Below the pieces are notes generated by a model. It made no database searches, was not told the origin of the DNA, and worked only from the letters and a program-made list of their open reading frames with translations. A DNA stretch of 64,000 bases from sequence record MT708547.1. One strand, given 5' to 3'. Both the position numbers and the translations under genes were made by a program. Below are positions 2,606 to 55,371 of this stretch, piece after piece. The stretch's first letter is position 1, and every line of letters starts with the position of its first letter.

Positions 2606-4921
2606 ATGATTAACGTTATTAAACGTGATGGATCAAAAGAACCACTCGACCTTGATAAAATTCACCAGATTTTATTTTTTGCATGTGAAGGTATTTCTGG
2701 TGTGTCTGTGTCCGAAATTGAAATTCGTGCTAAATTGCAATTTCATGAAGGAATTAAAACTTCTGTAATTCATGATATCCTAATTAAAAGTTCATCAGAG
2801 CTTATTTCTGAAGATACTCCAAATTATCAATACGTAGCTGGTCGTCTTTTGAATTATAGTATTCGTAAAGAAGTTTATGGTCAGTATGAACCAATTCCTT
2901 ACGGAGAATATGTAAATAACATGGTTCAAAAAGGTATATACGATCCTATCATTCTGGAAAAATATAATTCAGCAGAAATCGAAGAACTCGGGAAATGCAT
3001 TAAACACAAACGTGATGATAAATTTACTTTTGTTGCAATGAGTCAATGGCAAGGTAAGTATCTGTGTAAAAACCGTGTAACTAAAGAAATTTATGAAACA
3101 CCACAAATGGCTTATATGACTATCGCTGCTACGATTTTCTCTGAATACAGTACTGAAATTCGTTTGTCATATGTTAAGAAGTTCTATGATGCTATTAGTA
3201 CTTTTGATATTAGTTTACCAACTCCGATTATGTCCGGTCTTCGCACTAATACACGTCAGTTCTCAAGTTGTGTAGTACTGAATGTTGGCGATAGTCTTGA
3301 TAGTATTGGTTCCAGTAATCATGCAATCCTGCGTTATATTTCACGTAAAGCAGGGCTTGGTGTTAATATGGGACGTATTCGTGCAATTGATTCTGCAATT
3401 CGTGATGGTGATGCAGTACATACTGGTGTAGTACCATTCTTATCCGCATTAGCAAAAACAGTTAAAAGCTGTTCACAGGGAGGTGTAAGAGGTGGTGCAG
3501 CAACCGTACATTTTCCAATGTGGCATTTGGAATTTGAAAATATTGTAGTACTGAAAAATAATAAAGGAACTGAATTTAACCGAGTAAGACAACTGGACTA
3601 TTGCTTCCAAATCAATAAGACATTATATCAACGATTGATTGATGGAAAAGACATTACATTCTTTAGCCCACATGATGTTCCTGATCTATATGATGCATTT
3701 TGTGCTGATCAAGAAGAATTTGAACGTCTGTATATTAAGTATGAACTCGATGAAACTATTCGTAGGAAAACTATGCCAGCGATTGAAGCATTTAGTCATC
3801 TAATACAAGAGCGTGCAGAAACTGGTCGCATTTATATTCAGAATATTGATAATGCCAATGAGCATGGTTCATTTATTCCAGAAATTGCACCAATTGAGCA
3901 AAGTAATTTGTGTCAGGAAATTGATTTACCATCTGTTCCATTTGAAGATATTAATAATGGTGAAGGTCTTATTAGCCTATGTACTTTGAGTGCTATTAAC
4001 TGGGGTAATTTTGACAAACCCGAAGATATGGAAGAAGCGTGTGATTTGGCTGTCCGTGCCCTGGATGCTATTCTTGATTATCAGGATTATCCAGTACTAC
4101 ATGCTGAACGAGCTACAAAGCTCTACAGACCACTTGGTGTTGGTATTATGAGCCTAGCCTATTTCCTGGCTAAACGTGGCTTAAAATACGATACAAACGC
4201 ATTGAGCACTATTAACGAATGGTCAGAAGCGTGGTCTTATTATTTGATTAAAGCATCCGTAAACCTTGCAAAAGAAAAAGGGCATTGTGATGGATTTAAG
4301 AATACTAAGTACTCACTGGGTTTATTCCCACATGACACTTATAAATCAGATTCATATATCAATGAAATTGCACCATATGAATTAAAACAAGATTGGGATT
4401 CCCTACGTGAAGAAATGATGGTGTATGGTATTCGTAATGCTACATTACATGCAAATATGCCAGGAGAAACATCATCACAAATCAGTAATAGTACTGCTGG
4501 TATTGAAAAGATTCGTTCTCTTGTAACAGTAAAAACTTCTAAAGATGGTGTTCTTAAACAAGTTGTACCTGAAATTTCAAAATTAAAGAACAAATATGAC
4601 CTACTATGGGAACAATCTGATAATATTGGTTATCTTCAGGTGTGCGGCGTTATGCAGAAATATATGGATCAAGGTATAAGTACTAATACGAGTTATAATC
4701 CTGAAAAGTTCCAAGATGGAAAAGTGCCAATGTCAGTACTGTTAACAGAACTTCTAATGGCTTATAAACTTAACACAAAACAACTATACTATCATAACGT
4801 GTTGGACAATGCTTCTGAAGTTGATATTGACAAATATATGGAAGAAAAAAATAAATTAACAAAAAATGATATTGTTTTGCTTGAGCTACCAGAAGATGAC
4901 TGTGAGAGTTGTAAATTGTAA
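2606..4921 (+). CDS. nrdA: Ribonucleoside-diphosphate reductase class Ia, alpha subunit
   Basis: ATP-cone VIKRDG, SLPTPIM, FSSC, GGVRGGAAT, QSNLCQEI, LKQLYY-like motif and C-terminal CESCKL. Confidence 0.98.
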   Translation: MINVIKRDGSKEPLDLDKIHQILFFACEGISGVSVSEIEIRAKLQFHEGIKTSVIHDILIKSSSELISEDTPNYQYVAGRLLNYSIRKEVYGQYEPIPYGEYVNNMVQKGIYDPIILEKYNSAEIEELGKCIKHKRDDKFTFVAMSQWQGKYLCKNRVTKEIYETPQMAYMTIAATIFSEYSTEIRLSYVKKFYDAISTFDISLPTPIMSGLRTNTRQFSSCVVLNVGDSLDSIGSSNHAILRYISRKAGLGVNMGRIRAIDSAIRDGDAVHTGVVPFLSALAKTVKSCSQGGVRGGAATVHFPMWHLEFENIVVLKNNKGTEFNRVRQLDYCFQINKTLYQRLIDGKDITFFSPHDVPDLYDAFCADQEEFERLYIKYELDETIRRKTMPAIEAFSHLIQERAETGRIYIQNIDNANEHGSFIPEIAPIEQSNLCQEIDLPSVPFEDINNGEGLISLCTLSAINWGNFDKPEDMEEACDLAVRALDAILDYQDYPVLHAERATKLYRPLGVGIMSLAYFLAKRGLKYDTNALSTINEWSEAWSYYLIKASVNLAKEKGHCDGFKNTKYSLGLFPHDTYKSDSYINEIAPYELKQDWDSLREEMMVYGIRNATLHANMPGETSSQISNSTAGIEKIRSLVTVKTSKDGVLKQVVPEISKLKNKYDLLWEQSDNIGYLQVCGVMQKYMDQGISTNTSYNPEKFQDGKVPMSVLLTELLMAYKLNTKQLYYHNVLDNASEVDIDKYMEEKNKLTKNDIVLLELPEDDCESCKL

Positions 4922-5019
4922 TATATTAATTACTAAAAATATCACAAATTAATATCAATAGTAAAAAGCTAAACACCATATAACGGTTTTTTACTTTCGA
5001 ATACAAATAATAATATAAT

Positions 5020-6197: not shown

Positions 6198-6204
6198 AAT
6201 ACAA

Positions 6205-6236
6205 AATTCAGTACTGATTAAGTACTGAATTTTTTT
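6205..6236 (+). terminator. Terminator hairpin after nrdB
   Basis: AATTCAGTACT-GATTA-AGTACTGAATT followed by a T-run. Confidence 0.65.
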
Positions 6237-6250
6237 ATAAGGTATAAATT

Positions 6251-10846: not shown

Positions 10847-12205
10847 ATGTCAATAAAAAAAGAAACTACAAAATTAAAACCCACCGCAGATCAGAAAGTT
10901 ATACTTGATGATTTTTTGGATAGAGTTGATAATTATCCAGGTAGGACTGAAGCTGTTCTTTCTGCACCTGCTGGTACTGGTAAAACGTTCACCACTGCTG
11001 AAATTATTAAATTACTTTATAAAGATTATAATATTGCGGTAACTTCTCCTACACACAAAGCAAATTCCGTAATTCAAAATATGCTTATCAACCAAGCAGG
11101 GATTACAAAAGAAGATGCAAAGGTAAGTACTATTCATTCTTTTCTTGGGCTTAAATTGGTACAGGAAAAAAATCATCAAGTACTGAAGCACGATCCACAT
11201 AGTAAATTATCAACAACCAACGTTGATGTTCTTATCGTGGACGAATGTTCTATGATTTCAGAAGAATTATATTTCCATATACAGAATCAATTACATCGTG
11301 TACGAAGGGCAGTGTTATACATTGGCGATAAATGTCAGTTACCACCAGTAGAAGCTGAAGTTATTGGTAAAGAAAAATTATCCCCAACCTTTGATGTTTC
11401 AGTACAGTATACATTAACTGAAGTACTACGTCAGGCAATGGACAATCCAGTACTATCAGTCGCTACTGCTATCAGAGAATGCATCGGTACCAATAAAGAT
11501 CCAATGCATATTATGGTCAATAACACAAAAGGCCATGATACTATCACACCCATTGATGATGAAGATTTATTTCTGAATGTATATAAGGATTTTATTATTG
11601 AAAACAAAGGTAATAGTAATAAAATTTTTGATTTCGTGAATGAAAATAAAATCCTTGCATATACGAATATGAGAGTTAATATTGCAAACATGTATATCAG
11701 AAATCAATTATATGATGTACTTGATGAATTTGTAAAAGGGGAACCTATTGTATTTGAGAGTATTACCGAAAATAGTCCATATTCTGTTCAACAAATTATT
11801 CAGTGTCCAAGAGTGAGAAAAGAATCATTTATGGGTATTGATTGTTGGCAGTTTCAGTTACTTAATGGTAGTTTCATTTACGGTGTTGGTCCTTCATCAC
11901 GTGCGGCAATGGAAGATCATTTACAGGATATGGTAAGAAAGATTGAAAAGAAAGTTTTTAATCCATTGACAAAACGACCATATGTATGGCAGGATTATTA
12001 TATCATTCGCAATAAAATGCATATCATTAATTACCCATACGCAACAACTGTCCACAAATCACAGGGTAGTACATTCGATAATATTTGGTTTGATACTGAT
12101 TTCATTGAGAGAATCCCAAACAATGATATGAAATGTCGAATTCTTTATACTGCAATGACACGTCCCAGATATAGTGTAATGTTAAGACAGAATGATTACT
12201 ATTAA
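10847..12205 (+). CDS. dda: SF1B DNA helicase (Dda/RecD-like)
   Basis: APAGTGKT, SPTHKA, IVDECSMI, IGDKCQLPPV, EVLRQ, TVHKSQGSTF, YTAMTR. Confidence 0.92.
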   Translation: MSIKKETTKLKPTADQKVILDDFLDRVDNYPGRTEAVLSAPAGTGKTFTTAEIIKLLYKDYNIAVTSPTHKANSVIQNMLINQAGITKEDAKVSTIHSFLGLKLVQEKNHQVLKHDPHSKLSTTNVDVLIVDECSMISEELYFHIQNQLHRVRRAVLYIGDKCQLPPVEAEVIGKEKLSPTFDVSVQYTLTEVLRQAMDNPVLSVATAIRECIGTNKDPMHIMVNNTKGHDTITPIDDEDLFLNVYKDFIIENKGNSNKIFDFVNENKILAYTNMRVNIANMYIRNQLYDVLDEFVKGEPIVFESITENSPYSVQQIIQCPRVRKESFMGIDCWQFQLLNGSFIYGVGPSSRAAMEDHLQDMVRKIEKKVFNPLTKRPYVWQDYYIIRNKMHIINYPYATTVHKSQGSTFDNIWFDTDFIERIPNNDMKCRILYTAMTRPRYSVMLRQNDYY

Positions 12206-49319: not shown

Positions 49320-50218
<899 letters not shown>

Positions 50219-50220
50219 AT

Positions 50221-50427
50221 ATGCATGTAAAAATTAACCCAGAAAAGAACTTTTATAATGAAGTATTCGGTTCTGAAGATTTAGTACGTCATTTTCCTGA
50301 ATTAGAAACAACTGGCGTCGAAGTTTATTATGATGGTGACTTGTATCATATCATTAAAGATGGTAAACTAGCTGGAGATTGCTGTTTCTTTGATGAAGAA
50401 GAAATGGAACATCTTACCATTCTATAA
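50221..50427 (+). CDS. Hypothetical protein
   Basis: 68-aa ORF. Confidence 0.6.
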   Translation: MHVKINPEKNFYNEVFGSEDLVRHFPELETTGVEVYYDGDLYHIIKDGKLAGDCCFFDEEEMEHLTIL

Positions 50428-50444
50428 ATAAAAAATGGAGGCGA

Positions 50445-50588
50445 CTGTATTCAGTACTGAATCAATTGATCGTTGCGTAATCAGATTCAGTTAGCGTAGT
50501 ATTAGCTGGGACGCGTACTTGTGATCCGCAACCACAACGTACTTAAAATCCAACGCGTGGAGGGTAAGCATTCTGTACTGAATAGCAG
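50445..50588 (+). ncRNA. Putative structured ncRNA with loop-loop complementarity
   Basis: Closing stem TATTCAGTAC/GTACTGAATA; loops contain GTTGCG and CGCAAC. Confidence 0.55.
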
Positions 50589-50616
50589 AAGGGCTACAAA
50601 AACTTATACTTCAAAA

Positions 50617-50794
50617 AGGTTCGGGAAGTATTCGTAATAAACCGTTTAATCGTCTTATCAGTACTATGAACAACCAATATATTTGTGGTGGATATTATTG
50701 GACTCAAGTAGATGATATTATCTTTGTACGCTTTCTAACCAAAAGGTCAGATAATAAAAATGTAAGAAAATTTCAGTACTGATAGCTGGAACCT
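50617..50794 (+). ncRNA. Putative multibranch ncRNA
   Basis: Nested stems AGGTTC/GAACCT, TATCAGTACT/AGTACTGATA, CCAATA/TATTGG, ATTATCT/AGATAAT. Confidence 0.45.
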
Positions 50795-50853
50795 TACTAT
50801 AGTAAAAAAAGACCTGATATGACTCGCTTAGGTCTTTAAATTATATAATGCGA

Positions 50854-50925
50854 GGGACGCTACGCCTTAGTTTAGGGCTAAATCGTAAGGATTGAGTACT
50901 AAACCGCCTTGAGAGTCCCAAGGCA
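50854..50925 (+). ncRNA. Putative pseudoknotted ncRNA
   Basis: GGGAC/GTCCC crossing GCCTT/AAGGC; GC-rich and intergenic. Confidence 0.45.
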
Positions 50926-51073
50926 ACTTTTAATTTAAACAAATTTGTACAAAACACAAAAAGGTGATATAATGATTCTATCTGAAGAAGATTGGGGTGT
51001 TTATCCTAAAGACGAATTTGATGGATTTTAATAAAAAATCTTGAACAAAAACAAAATAATGTGATATAATATT

Positions 51074-51205
51074 AGTACTGAATGAGGATAGGTGCAGTTG
51101 GTGAGATACCTCATGAGAAATCATAGACACCGTAGAAAGCGAAGGGCTTGGTGAGCGACGGCAATAGACAAGCATAGTAGAGGCTTGAAGAACTCATTTA
51201 GTACT
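51074..51205 (+). ncRNA. Repeated ncRNA family B, copy 1
   Basis: Closing stem AGTACTGAATGAG/CTCATTTAGTACT; shares motifs with 51804-51903; promoter at 51041-51070. Confidence 0.65.
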
Positions 51206-51309
51206 TTTTTAATTTAAAGAATTGTGCACTAGTTGTTTTAAATCAGTAAAACACCGAAGATGCAAGTACTATGTAGTATGTCAAAATCAAATACAATAAG
51301 AGTATACAT

Positions 51310-51783
51310 ATGAAAGTCGAATTGGGAAGTACTATCAAAGCAGGTTATACTGTTTCAGTTACAACGTGGGAAAATGATGGAGATAATTATCAAACAAATG
51401 ACATTGTAGGTTTATCTAAAGAAGATGCAAAAATGTTTATTGATACTTTACCCATTTTTAAATGCGTTCATAGTAAAAAGAAAGGTCTTGGAAACAAAGA
51501 ACTTAATATTAACCAGTACTTGGGTAAGTTCGAAGACCTAATCAATAACAATATTATCACAGTGTCATTTGCTGAAAAATATTTTGGTTATATTAACCCA
51601 AATAGTGATTATGATGAAGATGAACAACAAGACACGATTATTGAAGCATTGTCTGAAATTCTAGGATATCCAGTTGAATACGATTATGGTTTTATCAGAG
51701 TCTTTGAAAAAGTTCAAGTACTCTACTTCGATGAAGATACCGTAATTCCTTCAGGTTTGAAAGTAGACACCAGTACTTTATAA
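51310..51783 (+). CDS. Hypothetical protein
   Basis: 157-aa ORF. Confidence 0.65.
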   Translation: MKVELGSTIKAGYTVSVTTWENDGDNYQTNDIVGLSKEDAKMFIDTLPIFKCVHSKKKGLGNKELNINQYLGKFEDLINNNIITVSFAEKYFGYINPNSDYDEDEQQDTIIEALSEILGYPVEYDYGFIRVFEKVQVLYFDEDTVIPSGLKVDTSTL

Positions 51784-51924: not shown

Positions 51925-52020
51925 GTGGGTGTGGCGGTATTGGTTGTACGCAAAGGTCTTAAAAACCTTCAGAGGGCTTAAAATGCATTCCTCTTGTGAG
52001 TTCGAATCTCATCACCCGTA
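51925..52020 (+). tRNA. tRNA-Leu(TAA), CCA not encoded
   Basis: AAGGT-CT-TAA-AA-ACCTT anticodon arm, long variable arm, GTGAG-TTCGAAT-CTCAT T-arm. Confidence 0.85.
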
Positions 52021-52049
52021 CTCATTAAATAGTCAATGGATTGACACAA

Positions 52050-52868
52050 ATGGCAAGAAAAGATATATTAGAACAAAAAGAATTAATATTAGATTTAATT
52101 TCCAAGAATACCGCAAAATCAACAATATGTAAGATTTTAAATTGTAAATCATCAACGTTAGATACGTATTTGAAAAAGATGGGTATTATATATAAAGGAA
52201 ATCAATCTGGTAAAGGAACAAAGAAAGGAACACATTCAAAATATGTAGAAGCTTCACATTTTCTTAATAAAAATTCATCAATATCATCTAATCAATTAAA
52301 ACTAAAATTATTGAGAGAAGGATATTTTGAACATAAATGTTCAAAATGTGAATTGACAGAATGGATGGGTAAACGAATACCAATTGAATTGGAACACATA
52401 GATGGTGATAATACAAATAACGAATTATCAAATCTATGTATGTTATGCCCAAATTGTCACGCACAAACCGATACATATAAAGGAAAAAATAAAAAATCAG
52501 TTCGTGAAAAGAAACATATACAAGAAATTTTAAATTTTGAAAATTCTTTTGAACGTTCAGAAATAAAAGATAAAGTTGGGAAGAAAATTAGAATTTCCAA
52601 AATTAAAAAATGTGAAGAATGTGGTAATGAATATAAAGGTAAAAATAAAAAATATTGTTCACGTGTTTGTATGCATTTATCACAAAAAAAATTTCTTTTG
52701 ACATACGAAGAACTTAAAGAAATAATTTGGAAATATCCAAGAACAAAAATAGGAGAAATGTATGGTGTTTCTGATAATACTGTCTTGAAACGTTGTAAAC
52801 TTCTTGATATAGAAGTTCCACCATTGGGATATTTCATAAGTTCAAAATATAAAGATAATAATCAATAA
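52050..52868 (+). mobile_element. Free-standing HNH homing endonuclease
   Basis: CSKCELTEWMGKRIPIELEHIDGDNTNNELSNLCMLCPNCHAQT; C-terminal Zn finger and HTH-like segment. Confidence 0.9.
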
Positions 52869-52884
52869 TAAATATAATAACAAA

Positions 52885-52960
<76 letters not shown>

Positions 52961-52965
52961 AATTC

Positions 52966-53061
52966 AACAGGTAGTAACGCTCTTAGGTGTACATTAATAT
53001 AGGAATAAGGGTTAACAGTACTGTACACAAACGAGTAACCCCGAAAGACCCGAAACCTGTT
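52966..53061 (+). ncRNA. Putative structured ncRNA
   Basis: AACAGGT/ACCTGTT closing stem; GTGTACA/TGTACAC; GGGTTA/TAACCC pseudoknot candidate. Confidence 0.5.
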
Positions 53062-53071
53062 AAAGTTTTAC

Positions 53072-53121
53072 GGATGATTATAAATCTGAATTGACAGAAA
53101 CAGCTAAAACTGTTATTATCC
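53072..53121 (+). ncRNA. Repeated 50-nt ncRNA family A, copy 1
   Basis: GGATGAT/ATTATCC, TATAAATCTGAATTGACAG core, AACAG/CTGTT hairpin. Confidence 0.7.
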
Positions 53122-53129
53122 TATTTTAT

Positions 53130-53313
53130 TCCACAATCAGACGTATATGGTGTAAGTTACGTCGATGAAATCCAGAACAAGATCTCTGGTACTCTAGGAA
53201 GTGGTGAATGTTAACCTAGACGGGTTTGTTAATTGGACGATAAGCAATTAATACTTGACTAGCAGGTTTAAACTAGAGGTGACTGTCCTTCACTAAACTG
53301 GAAAACCGGATGG
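53130..53313 (+). ncRNA. Putative multi-hairpin ncRNA
   Basis: Hairpins GACGT/ACGTC, CCAGA/TCTGG, TCTAGG/CCTAGA, TTAATTG/CAATTAA, CTAG/CTAG. Confidence 0.45.
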
Positions 53314-53332
53314 ATTTTTAATTAAAAAAGTG

Positions 53333-53361
53333 TTGAACAAAATGTTCAATAATGATATAAT
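53333..53361 (+). promoter_or_regulatory. Sigma70-like promoter with a palindrome over the -35
   Basis: TTGAAC-N17-TATAAT containing TGAAC-N5-GTTCA. Confidence 0.7.
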
Positions 53362-53370
53362 AATTATCAA

Positions 53371-53443
53371 TGTAAGGCGTGGAACAATGTTTACATAAGT
53401 TACTTAGTAGCCTGTACGCCCCACGTCAAGGTAGCCGAAAGGC
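53371..53443 (+). ncRNA. Putative pseudoknotted ncRNA
   Basis: TGTAA/TTACA crossing GGCGTGG/CCACGTC; GCC-GAAA-GGC hairpin. Confidence 0.45.
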
Positions 53444-53452
53444 AAGTTTAAT

Positions 53453-53502
53453 GGGTGGTTATAAATCTGAATTGACAGAGACTATTAAAACAGTCACCAT
53501 CC
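53453..53502 (+). ncRNA. Repeated 50-nt ncRNA family A, copy 2
   Basis: GGGTGGT/ACCATCC; same core; GACT/AGTC. Confidence 0.7.
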
Positions 53503-53688
53503 AAATTTTAATTTAATAGTTTAGTATGAATAAAAAACAAATACATAAACAATATGATGAAATTGCAGTGAAGGTTTTTCGTGGTGAATTAGGTTATAAA
53601 CCATCTGTTAAATCTAAATATTCAAAATCTTCTTCACTAAAATTCAATCATAAAATAGAGTTTAAATAGTACTGGACAATAATATATA

Positions 53689-54138
53689 ATGAATATCACT
53701 AATGTAAAAGATTTTTTAGAATATTTTATTAAGAATACTCGTGCACGTGATGAATTAGAAAAGAATGGATTCATCCAAGGTTACGATTGCACTAATTTCT
53801 TTTATACTATTGATAAACATGAATATTATGTCGATGCAATTTTAATTGATGATGATGGGTATTGCGTTGGATTTTCGTTCGAAGATATATCACAAGATGC
53901 ACCAATAAACTTTTATGCATTATATTATAATAAAAAAGATAATATTTTGAAATTAGGATTTACCAGTGACACGGATGAAGATGTTGTATTCAATTGTAAC
54001 ACATGGTTGGAACATGATTCATTCTTTCAAAGTACATTAATTCATAACTTTATGACAACAGATTTAGAGTACTGGAAAACTTGTATAGAATTACTTAATG
54101 TAATTTATAATGAACAAGTCAAACAAAAATGGCAATAA
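53689..54138 (+). CDS. F[QM]xS-module family protein
   Basis: WLEHDSFFQSTLIHNFMTTDLEYWKTCIEL. Confidence 0.7.
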   Translation: MNITNVKDFLEYFIKNTRARDELEKNGFIQGYDCTNFFYTIDKHEYYVDAILIDDDGYCVGFSFEDISQDAPINFYALYYNKKDNILKLGFTSDTDEDVVFNCNTWLEHDSFFQSTLIHNFMTTDLEYWKTCIELLNVIYNEQVKQKWQ

Positions 54139-54203
54139 TCACAGAACGGTTCAGCATTTGGTAGTATGTTTGACTGAATAAAGCATAAACGTTTAAAAAA
54201 GTG

Positions 54204-54231
54204 TTGAACAAAAAGTTCAGTACTGTATAAT
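54204..54231 (+). promoter_or_regulatory. Promoter for tRNA-Arg
   Basis: TTGAAC-N16-TATAAT with TGAAC-N5-GTTCA. Confidence 0.65.
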
Positions 54232-54242
54232 TGACTTACTAC

Positions 54243-54316
54243 GTCCCCTTAGTTCAGTTGGATAGAACAACTGCCTTCTAAGCAGTAGGTCACTGGTTCG
54301 AGTCCAGTAGGGGATA
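54243..54316 (+). tRNA. tRNA-Arg(TCT)
   Basis: ACTGC-CT-TCT-AA-GCAGT; ACTGG-TTCGAGT-CCAGT. Confidence 0.92.
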
Positions 54317-54372
54317 TACCATACAATATGGGAATAGTTAGAAGATATTCCCAATTTTAATTTAAAAAAGTG

Positions 54373-54401
54373 TTGAACAAAAAGTTCAATAATGATATAA
54401 T
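54373..54401 (+). promoter_or_regulatory. Promoter for tRNA-Ser(GCT)
   Basis: TTGAAC-N17-TATAAT with TGAAC-N5-GTTCA. Confidence 0.7.
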
Positions 54402-54466
54402 GGTATTATAAAAGATTGTAATACATAATATTAACTTTTAAGAACATAATTAAGTTATCATACACA

Positions 54467-54558
<92 letters not shown>

Positions 54559-54577
54559 TAAAATTCAATTAAAAAAT

Positions 54578-54708
<131 letters not shown>

Positions 54709-54716
54709 GATTTCAT

Positions 54717-54766
54717 GGATAGTTATAAAGTTGAATTAACAGCGACACTTAAAATTGTCACTATCC
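54717..54766 (+). ncRNA. Repeated 50-nt ncRNA family A, copy 3
   Basis: GGATAGT/ACTATCC; TATAAAGTTGAATTAACAG; GACA/TGTC. Confidence 0.7.
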
Positions 54767-54825
54767 AAATTTTAATTTAAATAGTACTTGACAAAAATAT
54801 TCAGTACTGATACATAAAGAATATT

Positions 54826-55136
54826 GGCCCCTTAGCTCACGCTTTGGTTAGAGCAGACGACTCATCGATAAATGGTGACTTTCACAAGTAATTGTGATTG
54901 AAAAACTGGATGAATTCAGGGAAACCTTAACACATAATGGTGATGGCAATCCTGAGCCAAGCCCAATAAGCGTATTGGGAAGGTGCAGAGACTAGGTGGT
55001 TCAGCACGATCTTGCTGTGTAATACACCAATAGCGTCCGGCATCCTTATAGGATGATGATATAGTCCTTTCTATAATGAAAATTATAGGTAAAAAGAATC
55101 GTTTGGTACTGTGTTCGACTCACAGAGGGGCCACCA
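54826..55136 (+). tRNA. tRNA-Ile2(CAT), interrupted by a group I intron (exons 54826-54865 and 55097-55136)
   Basis: Joined exons give GGCCCCTTAGCTCA..GACGA-CT-CAT-AA-TCGTT..AGGGGCCACCA, closely resembling E. coli ileX. Confidence 0.92.
54866..55096 (+). mobile_element. Group I self-splicing intron, 231 nt, ORF-less
   Basis: AATTCAGGGAAACC (54913), GGCAATCCTGAGCCAA (54945), GAAGGTGCAGAGACTAG (54979), GATGATATAGTCC (55055); exon ends in U, intron ends in G. Confidence 0.92.
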
Positions 55137-55141
55137 CACAT

Positions 55142-55213
55142 TGTACTCTTCTCCTGTAAGGAGAATGACAAAAAGCTATCCGAAAGATAGAAAGCCTGAA
55201 ATAACAGGGTACA
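55142..55213 (+). ncRNA. Putative four-way-junction ncRNA
   Basis: TGTAC/GTACA enclosing TTCTCC/GGAGAA, CTATC/GATAG and CCTG/CAGG. Confidence 0.5.
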
Positions 55214-55223
55214 TTTAATCAAT

Positions 55224-55306
55224 TGGTAGTTGGCAGAGCGGCTTTTGCGACGGACTGTTAATCCGTGTCAGAAATGACAAGACTGGTTCGACTCCAGTAC
55301 TACCAG
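55224..55306 (+). tRNA. tRNA-Asn(GTT) with a long variable arm, CCA not encoded
   Basis: TGGTAGT/ACTACCA, ACGGA-CT-GTT-AA-TCCGT, GTCA-GAAA-TGAC arm, G73. Confidence 0.85.
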
Positions 55307-55371
55307 CATATAAAAAATGAACTTCAGAACAATAAATAATATCATAGAGGATATTATGAGGTCTGAAGTTC

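Follow-up and report, generated by a model that had tools for sequence, protein, structure and literature searches.

The tRNA genes of RaK2-like giant phages (Klebsiella, E. coli, Salmonella, Pectobacterium, and Erwinia) are accompanied by a conserved RNA of about 140-155 bases whose folding is predicted from sequence comparison. In the window, by which we mean the whole 64,000-nucleotide stretch of DNA analysed, positions 50439-50595 (+ strand) on balance appear to be a gene for a structured non-coding RNA of an undescribed family. As shown by comparison of homologues, the predicted RNA is closed by a terminal helix of 9-10 bp (P1) and carries three or four hairpins on a multi-helix junction, with the loops of hairpins P2 and P4 predicted to pair with each other over 6-8 bases. 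An earlier note, made from the letters of the window alone, had proposed a compact RNA with a terminal stem and two mutually pairing loops. Direct reading of the sequence found every stem and loop that it named in place, and covariation in four or five lineages, including in the loop-loop helix, bore the architecture out; the complementarity of the loops, on whose conservation in homologues the proposal had been made to depend, was conserved.

Locus and parts of the element

Positions 50200-51300 of the window match positions 298200-299300 of the genome of Muenster, a Klebsiella jumbo phage, at 100% identity (MT708547, Alcyoneusvirus, 347 kb). The element lies at the opening of an ORF-poor gap (50430-51310) behind a 68-aa gene, and downstream of it is a tRNA region containing six tRNAs at 51925-55307 (ARAGORN, window), HNH endonuclease genes, and a group I intron. 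A MITE-like or repeated mobile element would have many copies with a common interior; the Muenster genome contains a single copy, and its internal stems covary and are not copied. The parts of the Muenster element are listed below in window coordinates, where groups A and B are the two sets of homologues defined in the next section.

50423-50430, + strand: TATAAATA, a T4-type late-promoter-like word 17 nt ahead of P1; from sequence, a possible promoter only.
50439-50447, + strand: 5' flank that probably belongs to the RNA; consensus close to GCGnnnG, conserved in both groups and covered by both covariance models.
50448-50457, + strand: P1 5' arm, TATTCAGTAC; partner 50575-50584; invariant in group A and covarying with group B.
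50458-50489, + strand: P2 hairpin; outer stem 50458-63/50484-89 (TGAATC/GATTCA) and 3-nt bulge 50464-66.
50467-70/50480-83, + strand: P2 inner stem TGAT/ATCA, with loop L2 at 50471-79; from sequence.
50472-50477, + strand: GUUGCG in L2, candidate 5' half of the kissing helix; partner 50527-50532.
50493-50507, + strand: P3 hairpin, AGC 50493-95 and GCT 50505-07 with a 9-nt loop; the weakest helix in group A, supported by group B.
50508-50514, + strand: junction J3/4, partly conserved and UCACG-like in relatives; from the alignments, with invariant UUCACGAGG in group B.
50515-50542, + strand: P4 hairpin; GTAC and TTGTG 50515-23, loop L4 50524-32, CACAA 50533-37, bulged C 50538, GTAC 50539-42.
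50527-50532, + strand: CGCAAC in L4, candidate 3' half of the kissing helix; partner 50472-50477.
50542-50568, + strand: P5; outer CTTA 50542-45 and TAAG 50565-68 with internal loop AAA/GGG, an unproven candidate pairing.
50549-52/50558-61, + strand: P5 inner hairpin TCCA/TGGA with ACGCG loop 50553-57; the inner stem covaries.
50569-50574, + strand: junction J5/1, CATTCT; from the alignments.
50575-50584, + strand: P1 3' arm, GTACTGAATA; partner 50448-50457.
50585-50595, + strand: conserved 3' flank, GCAGAAGGGCT; AAGG..CU is common to group B.

The element was found in the tRNA region of every lineage, and tRNA genes were its only recurrent neighbours. In 7t3, fENko-Kae01, and Hallingskeid it is followed after 25-60 nt by a same-strand tRNA-Gly(UCC). 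A tRNA-Thr lies about 380 nt downstream in Asteriusvirus, and Turkey5 has in addition a tRNA-Asn about 900 nt upstream; in Muenster the tRNA cluster follows the element. No protein neighbour that might be a candidate partner was conserved, the flanking proteins being unrelated between lineages.

Homologues and covariation

BLAST identified nine Alcyoneusvirus and 37 Asteriusvirus records (E. coli, Salmonella), which we define as group A. Between Alcyoneusvirus and Asteriusvirus, similarity was confined to the ends of the element and the interior had diverged. Among whole genomes of related jumbo phages, covariance model R1 gave a weak match (E = 0.03) in Salmonella phage 7t3, inside the tRNA region, and BLAST from this match recovered the rest of group B, consisting, besides 7t3, of near-identical copies in Munch, SE_PL, and PHA46 (Salmonella) and fENko-Kae01 (Klebsiella), a copy at 82% identity in CBB (Pectobacterium), and a partial match in Hallingskeid (Erwinia). 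Covariance model R2, built from four group-B sequence types alone, recovered the group-A elements at full length (E about 3e-7 to 1e-4), and we therefore consider the two groups homologous. A covariance-model search did not detect the element in the related phages GAP32, XbC2, Kaldavass, BF, and Xoo-sp13, where it is either absent or undetectable and therefore dispensable for the phage group. Exact and gapped pattern scans of IMG/VR, metagenomes, and bacterial genomes returned one 121Q copy, one CBB copy, and one Asteriusvirus-like metagenome contig, with no element in the bacterial genomes; both models rejected the remaining matches as chance. The metagenome match L055, at 36 bits with R1, proved to be a tandem palindrome array, and we discarded it as a homologue.

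The group-A alignment comprised 15 sequences, and pairs were counted over 14 distinct sequences. The model-fitted joint alignment A10 misplaced the group-A inner helices, so only its P1 columns were counted and the other helices were compared by hand. All sequences represent only four or five independent lineages, and the covariation counts therefore rest on few evolutionary events. In group A, 98.4% of cells were paired across the 14 distinct sequences, a value that none of 500 column shuffles attained, and 20-40% were paired when the partner columns were slid. In the four group-B sequences, 13 pairs had changed on both sides (0/500 shuffles reached this number; slid controls gave at most 2). 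For Muenster, about 2% of trials with shuffled loops gave at least six contiguous pairs, and for the Asteriusvirus loops 0.7-2% did. Folding energy was only mildly unusual (z = -2.2, + strand; z = -3.9, - strand), and taken alone is weak evidence. We regard the comparison among sequences as decisive for what is very probably a real, conserved RNA structure, loop-loop helix included.

Three P1 pairs changed on both sides across groups (UA to AU, UA to CG, and AU to GC), and both arms of the group-B helix, UAACCAGUA/UACUGGUUA, differ jointly from those of group A. The closing stem of the earlier note is real in this respect, and we settled on P1 as an RNA helix because its two arms changed together in group B. 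By itself it is weaker evidence than it appears, since the palindrome that builds it, TTCAGTACTGAA, is over-represented window-wide, with 67 matches at ≤2 mismatches against 4.8 expected. A 16-bp alternative P1, pairing whole palindrome with whole palindrome, was possible in group A and impossible in group B, and was rejected. A CUG/CAG extension of P1 was limited to the Muenster/RaK2 subgroup of Alcyoneusvirus.

The hairpins covaried as well. Three of the four pairs in the P2 inner stem changed on both sides between Alcyoneusvirus (UGAU/AUCA) and Asteriusvirus (GGGA/UCCC), and the P2 outer stem had other sequences in group B that still paired (CTGG/CCAG, CTAG/CTAG, and GCAG/CTGC). The group-B P2 has three segments. 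P3 covaried in group B from AGC/GCU to AGU/ACU, as did the next pair. Every pair of P4 was standard in the 15 group-A sequences, with GC/AU exchanges at four positions. The hairpin recurs in group B, lengthened at its base by a further stem that covaries as well. P2 (10-11 bp) and P4 (7-9 bp) had similar lengths in every lineage and left the same junction. The P5 inner stem was UCCA/UGGA, CCCA/UGGG, or CCUA/UAGG in group A. We classified this inner hairpin as a variable insertion because group B was missing it while the flanking strand AAAA...GGRUAAG was retained. The earlier suggestion that the fifth loop could also pair with the ACGCGT at 50511-50516 in Muenster did not hold: in the close relative OU509535 this site reads ACATAT and loop 5 is unaltered, and the P5 hairpin is missing altogether from group B.

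Loop-loop pairs were GUUGCG/CGCAAC in Alcyoneusvirus and GUUGUA/UACAAC or GUUGUG/UACAAC (with a G-U pair) in Asteriusvirus, where complementarity extended to eight contiguous pairs, or 8/9 loop bases. In group B the corresponding helix was GUAGUGA/UCACAAC (7t3, CBB), in which a central A-A mismatch is conserved and no more than 4-5 pairs are contiguous, and GUAAUGA/UCAUGAC in Hallingskeid, a further GC to AU exchange at position 4. Among the 14 group-A sequences, position 5 (columns 36:88) was UA in nine and CG in five, and position 6 (columns 37:87) was GU in six, GC in five, and AU in three. Three positions of the helix had alternative standard pairs; over four lineages, position 4 alternates between GC and AU and position 5 between CG and UA. 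A variant on a metatranscriptome contig had U-G and G-U wobble pairs in this helix. Complementary hairpin loops are kept here by compensatory change, as in a kissing loop. The minimum free energy fold of Muenster instead places GUUGCG-CGCAAC in a nested helix extended by AUCA/UGAU. We prefer the kissing topology because RaK2 and other close relatives do not keep this extension, whereas covariation is seen in P2 and P4. Covariation alone does not separate intramolecular from intermolecular pairing of the predicted loop partners.

Strand, coding potential, and expression

We assigned the RNA to the + strand, the strand of the neighbouring tRNA genes, because of its G-U pairs. These occur at ≥8 sites on the + strand and would be A-C mismatches on the other: in the P5 outer stem, at kissing position 6, in P2 of EJP2, P5 of CMSTMSU, P3 of EC.P1 and UE-S1, the P4 basal stem of all group B, and P4 of CBB. 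Only two A-C sites favoured the other strand, and the flanking genes and tRNAs are all on the + strand. The element is likely to be an independent + strand non-coding RNA and not the leader of a protein gene.

A 38-aa CDS is annotated by GenBank inside the Muenster element and was not kept by relatives, and in PBECO4 the short frame from the conserved ATG already ends at its second codon. Directly after P1, Asteriusvirus genomes have GAAGGA-N8-ATG. The reading frame downstream is not conserved: Turkey5 and PBECO4 disagree in its start and register, UE-S1 and JP4 carry indels, and the stretch is itself a second, covarying structured RNA. We rejected a coding reading of the element or of this Asteriusvirus stretch because of the codon-2 stop, the frame changes, and the indels. 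Several deposited genomes contain spurious protein annotations over the RNA, for example CPT_Muenster_456 and 7t3_031, which a covariance model would correct.

No infection transcriptome was found in the searchable literature, and papers on RaK2, CBB, fENko-Kae01, and fEgEco12 mentioned neither such an RNA nor a transcriptome. Four RNA-labelled public libraries contained short contigs over the Asteriusvirus element, unstranded and with DNA carry-over possible. On L006 these covered 558-1028; 828-1031; 731-958 plus 929-1068; and 565-1055 followed by divergent sequence. Each of the first three sets stops no more than about 30 nt from the U-run behind the second structured RNA, with the proviso that contig ends need not be transcript ends, and the contigs are compatible with a short transcription unit. 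No credible sigma-70 promoter was found ahead of P1. The word TATAAATA, which the earlier note had placed just ahead of the element, is indeed present at 50423-50430 and is specific to Muenster; its relatives in all lineages carry only loosely similar A/T-rich, TAAAT-like words at a similar distance. ATAAATA was proposed as the late-promoter consensus of the phage group in the CBB paper (PMC5259590).

Known RNAs and possible roles

A search of Rfam, which the earlier note had suggested, yielded no family in any lineage. Rfam 15 contains 4227 models, including riboswitches, ribozymes, pRNA, ROOL, GOLLD, 6S, tmRNA, and Y RNA; there was no gathering-level match on the element, only chance-level snoRNA/sRNA matches at E ≤ 10 over 50200-51400, and nothing at E ≤ 1 on the Asteriusvirus, 7t3, CBB, Hallingskeid, and fENko-Kae01 copies. 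Neither an ARAGORN tRNA at 50439-50595 nor a match to RF00005 at E ≤ 10 was found.

The closest analogues by location and size are T4 RNA C and RNA D, two stable products of that phage's tRNA region with no assigned role (PMC3014915). RNA C (species 1, 139 nt) and RNA D (species 2, 119 nt) resemble the Muenster RNA in lying in a tRNA cluster, on the tRNA strand, with paired termini. They are not detectably homologous to it. RNA C has a tRNA-type T arm (GGUUCGAAUCC), whereas the Muenster RNA lacks both T and D arms and draws no score from tRNA models, and in a homology search of the T4 tRNA region with filters off, R1 and R2 reached at best 7.6 bits on a 37-nt fragment.

The bacterial Y RNA-like YrlA shares a modular RNA plan, a long closing terminal stem, and a tRNA-like linkage. 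In CBB, a T-arm followed by a D-arm, the order seen in YrlA, lies 37 nt upstream of the element and scored 31 bits against a cut-off of 69. The YrlA model (RF02553) had no match on the element and none in the Muenster, PBECO4, and Hallingskeid genomes. Sub-threshold matches occurred in 13/14 control genomes, and since the 7t3 match spans the tRNA-Asp/tRNA-Lys junction, adjacent tRNA genes can yield such matches. The TROVE domain (PF05731, Ro) was absent from five phage genomes in a search to which control genomes responded. We set aside a link to YrlA because of the frequency of sub-threshold matches in controls and the position of the 7t3 match across two adjacent tRNA genes.

Of the readings considered, the likeliest is a stable RNA that acts in trans and is produced along with the tRNAs. 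Such an RNA would be transcribed with or next to the phage tRNA genes. A nearby A/T-rich late-type promoter and the processing enzymes for tRNA precursors may fix its ends; in 7t3-like phages, an RNase P cut at the tRNA-Gly 25-60 nt downstream would free it. The small RNA would then accumulate, as T4 RNA C and RNA D do. The kissing loop is predicted to lock P2 alongside P4 in a compact body, which could offer the conserved single strands of J3/4 (UCACG-like) and AAAA...GGRUAAG to a partner, perhaps a defence nuclease or a protein from the RNA machinery of host or phage. With no conserved neighbour protein, a role as trans-acting scaffold or decoy is a guess by analogy, which we adopt tentatively as a working idea. 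Phage tRNA islands repeatedly hold structured RNAs, such as T4 RNA C and D, ROOL, and GOLLD, whose roles have resisted explanation for decades. The present family offers an unusually tractable way into that question: the RNA is short, its fold is well defined and includes a covarying loop-loop helix, and it is present in phages of E. coli, Klebsiella, and Salmonella that can be cultivated.

One alternative, which we judge rather unlikely, is a self-assembling RNA in which L2-L4 pairing would join molecules hand in hand into dimers, rings, or cages. Loop complementarity kept by covariation is equally consistent with pairing between molecules, and the eight of nine complementary loop bases of Asteriusvirus are awkward and long for an intramolecular kiss, so that an intermolecular one fits as well or better. 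The phi29 packaging RNA (pRNA) is one precedent: its 5' and 3' ends form a terminal helix, and its two mutually complementary loops covary while the sequence drifts. The pRNA belongs to small protein-primed podoviruses, where it lies at the genome end and its loops pair over four bases between molecules; the Muenster RNA is found in the tRNA island of terminase-packaging jumbo myoviruses and has no Rfam match. Another precedent is that of ROOL and GOLLD, phage RNAs often near tRNA islands that form kissing-loop cages, with some of the loops earlier read as tertiary contacts (bioRxiv 10.1101/2024.12.08.627333). These phage and prophage RNAs are like the Muenster RNA in location and in an architecture that depends on covarying kissing loops, but they have 500-800+ nt, dozens of helices, and 8-mer and 14-mer cages, compared with about 150 nt and four or five helices here. 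Against self-assembly, the similar lengths of P2 and P4 from one junction are what a side-by-side kiss within one molecule needs, and the central mismatch in group B leaves a helix of 4-5 contiguous pairs that is weak for assembly. A miniature counterpart of ROOL and GOLLD, in which intermolecular L2-L4 pairing would form a ring, cage, or tether of the tRNA-cluster RNAs during infection, is unlikely, and equally so a new class of small self-cleaving ribozyme. If the RNA did self-assemble, it would be smaller than any other natural phage RNA that does so, the phi29 pRNA family excepted.

A self-cleaving ribozyme or processing element would cut the adjacent tRNA-cluster precursor and free a tRNA or its own ends. 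The multi-helix junction, tertiary loop-loop contact, and strongly conserved junction strands (UCACG and AAAA..GGRUAAG) have the typical layout of a small ribozyme, and the element has a tRNA a short way downstream in group B and is flanked by other structured RNAs in group A. This reading is likewise rather unlikely, given that no Rfam 15 ribozyme family matched even at E up to 10 and that no conserved candidate cleavage site was found. RNase P normally makes tRNA 5' ends, so a ribozyme is not needed for them.

Control of the downstream sequence in cis, by a riboswitch or a protein-binding leader, is improbable. A junction closed by P1 and bearing kissing hairpins recalls purine-type aptamers, in which parallel hairpins of matched length are joined by a loop-loop contact, and the GAAGGA-N8-ATG of Asteriusvirus comes directly after P1. 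Purine-type aptamers have three helices, compared with four or five here, and the contact in the present RNA is a predicted Watson-Crick helix of 6-8 bp. Unlike purine riboswitches, the Muenster family has no conserved downstream ORF or expression platform and no Rfam match; the content downstream varies by lineage. The Asteriusvirus frame is unconserved and its stretch a covarying RNA, as described above, while Muenster has no credible ORF for about 700 nt after the element and a tRNA comes next in group B. No terminator/anti-terminator alternative was conserved between P1 and the tRNA.

A feature of the DNA itself, with the two TTCAGTACTGAA copies as protein-binding sites or as a cruciform or origin-like element, is disfavoured and very improbable: the palindrome is strongly over-represented in the window and forms an iteron array of 22-bp period in an unrelated metagenome contig, but the P1 arms change jointly in group B, the internal hairpins and loop-loop helix covary in a way that paired binding sites do not predict, and G-U pairs are tolerated on one strand only. 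No palindromic hexamer is more frequent in the window than AGTACT, whose 150 copies fall in coding as well as non-coding DNA and occupy every one of the three reading frames. The word also occurs in the spacer of sigma-70-type promoters before tRNA genes, and it forms a terminator hairpin.

Candidate RNAs, a hairpin and a split tRNA gene in the Muenster window

In addition to the kissing-loop RNA element, the Muenster window contained the following:

51041-51208: second candidate small RNA of the window
50806-50840: hairpin AAGACCU...AGGUCUU
54827-55136: tRNA gene with a CAU anticodon, absent from the GenBank annotation

The candidate small RNA had a sigma-70-type promoter at 51041-51070 (TTGAAC and TATAAT separated by 18 nt, with TG upstream), followed by ~135 nt whose ends pair as a 13-bp helix (AGUACUGAAUGAG / CUCAUUUAGUACU) ahead of a U-run. 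Its folding z was -3.8; on the - strand, a 65-aa ORF of doubtful status overlapped it. Past the hairpin at 50806-50840, the - strand carried a run of seven U versus only UUU on the + strand, and the hairpin reads as a terminator of the - strand. The annotated genes surrounding it were all on the + strand. The CAU tRNA gene was split within the anticodon loop by a group I intron (Rfam, 54840-55088), with the 5' half beginning at GGCCCCTTAGCTCA and the 3' half containing the T arm and an encoded CCA at its end. A sigma-70-like promoter was located immediately upstream of this gene.

Candidate structured RNAs and a probable repeated module in jumbo phage loci

Features at other loci, including the Muenster terminal repeat, were as follows:

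L005:1538-1632 (phage 121Q), with counterparts at the equivalent position of other Asteriusvirus loci: structured RNA of ~95 nt, immediately 3' of the element
L074:201-291 (phage CBB): stretch with tRNA-type arms in permuted order, 37 nt upstream of the CBB copy of the element
L018:2872-2984 and 4827-4943, L017:4827-4941 (Mimasvirus-like phages Kaldavass and XbC2): features annotated as 'tRNA-OTHER' or tRNA-Phe(AAA)
L030:1501-1646 (Muenster record 11948-12093, terminal repeat): intergenic stretch of ~146 nt, starting at GTATTCAGTACT and ending at AGTACTGAATAG

The Asteriusvirus RNA had a closing stem (UGGUAC/GUACUA) and, inside it, a hairpin that showed compensatory changes. Downstream of the RNA came a U-run, with a strong sigma-70 promoter beyond it. 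Some records carried this RNA as a 54-aa protein in their annotation; indels within it break the reading frame.

The CBB stretch was ordered as T arm, 38-nt insert, acceptor-like strand, and D arm, with the halves of an anticodon-type stem flanking the T arm/D arm unit on the outside. This permuted arm order is YrlA-like. The stretch scored 31 bits against RF02553 (cut-off 69), and ARAGORN found no tRNA in it. Possible readings are tRNA debris or a tRNA-like RNA with permuted arms. The features annotated in Kaldavass and XbC2 were 113-117 nt, exceeding ordinary tRNA length, and may contain introns or represent other structured RNAs.

BLAST with a 191-nt query on the Muenster terminal repeat stretch gave 8 matching sites within the Muenster record and 4-12 in most of the related jumbo phages sampled. 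The stretch probably represents a module that combines an early promoter with a terminator and is present in repeated copies.

An over-represented palindrome

GTAC and AGTACT, extended to TTCAGTACTGAA, were strongly over-represented across the whole 64-kb window (e.g., 6200-6239, 54216, 54592, and 54800). AGTACT was the most frequent palindromic hexamer, with 150 occurrences compared to ~21 expected from base composition (31.5% G+C), and was present in non-coding DNA and in all three reading frames of coding DNA. The word formed a terminator hairpin at 6200-6239 and occurred within the spacer of sigma-70-like promoters preceding tRNA genes.

The identical palindrome was found in an unrelated contig:

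L055:1520-1690 (metagenome contig WFLX010380919.1): iteron/operator-like array of seven ATTCAGTACTG copies, spaced ~22 bp apart

With this layout, the copies resemble an array of iterons or operators.
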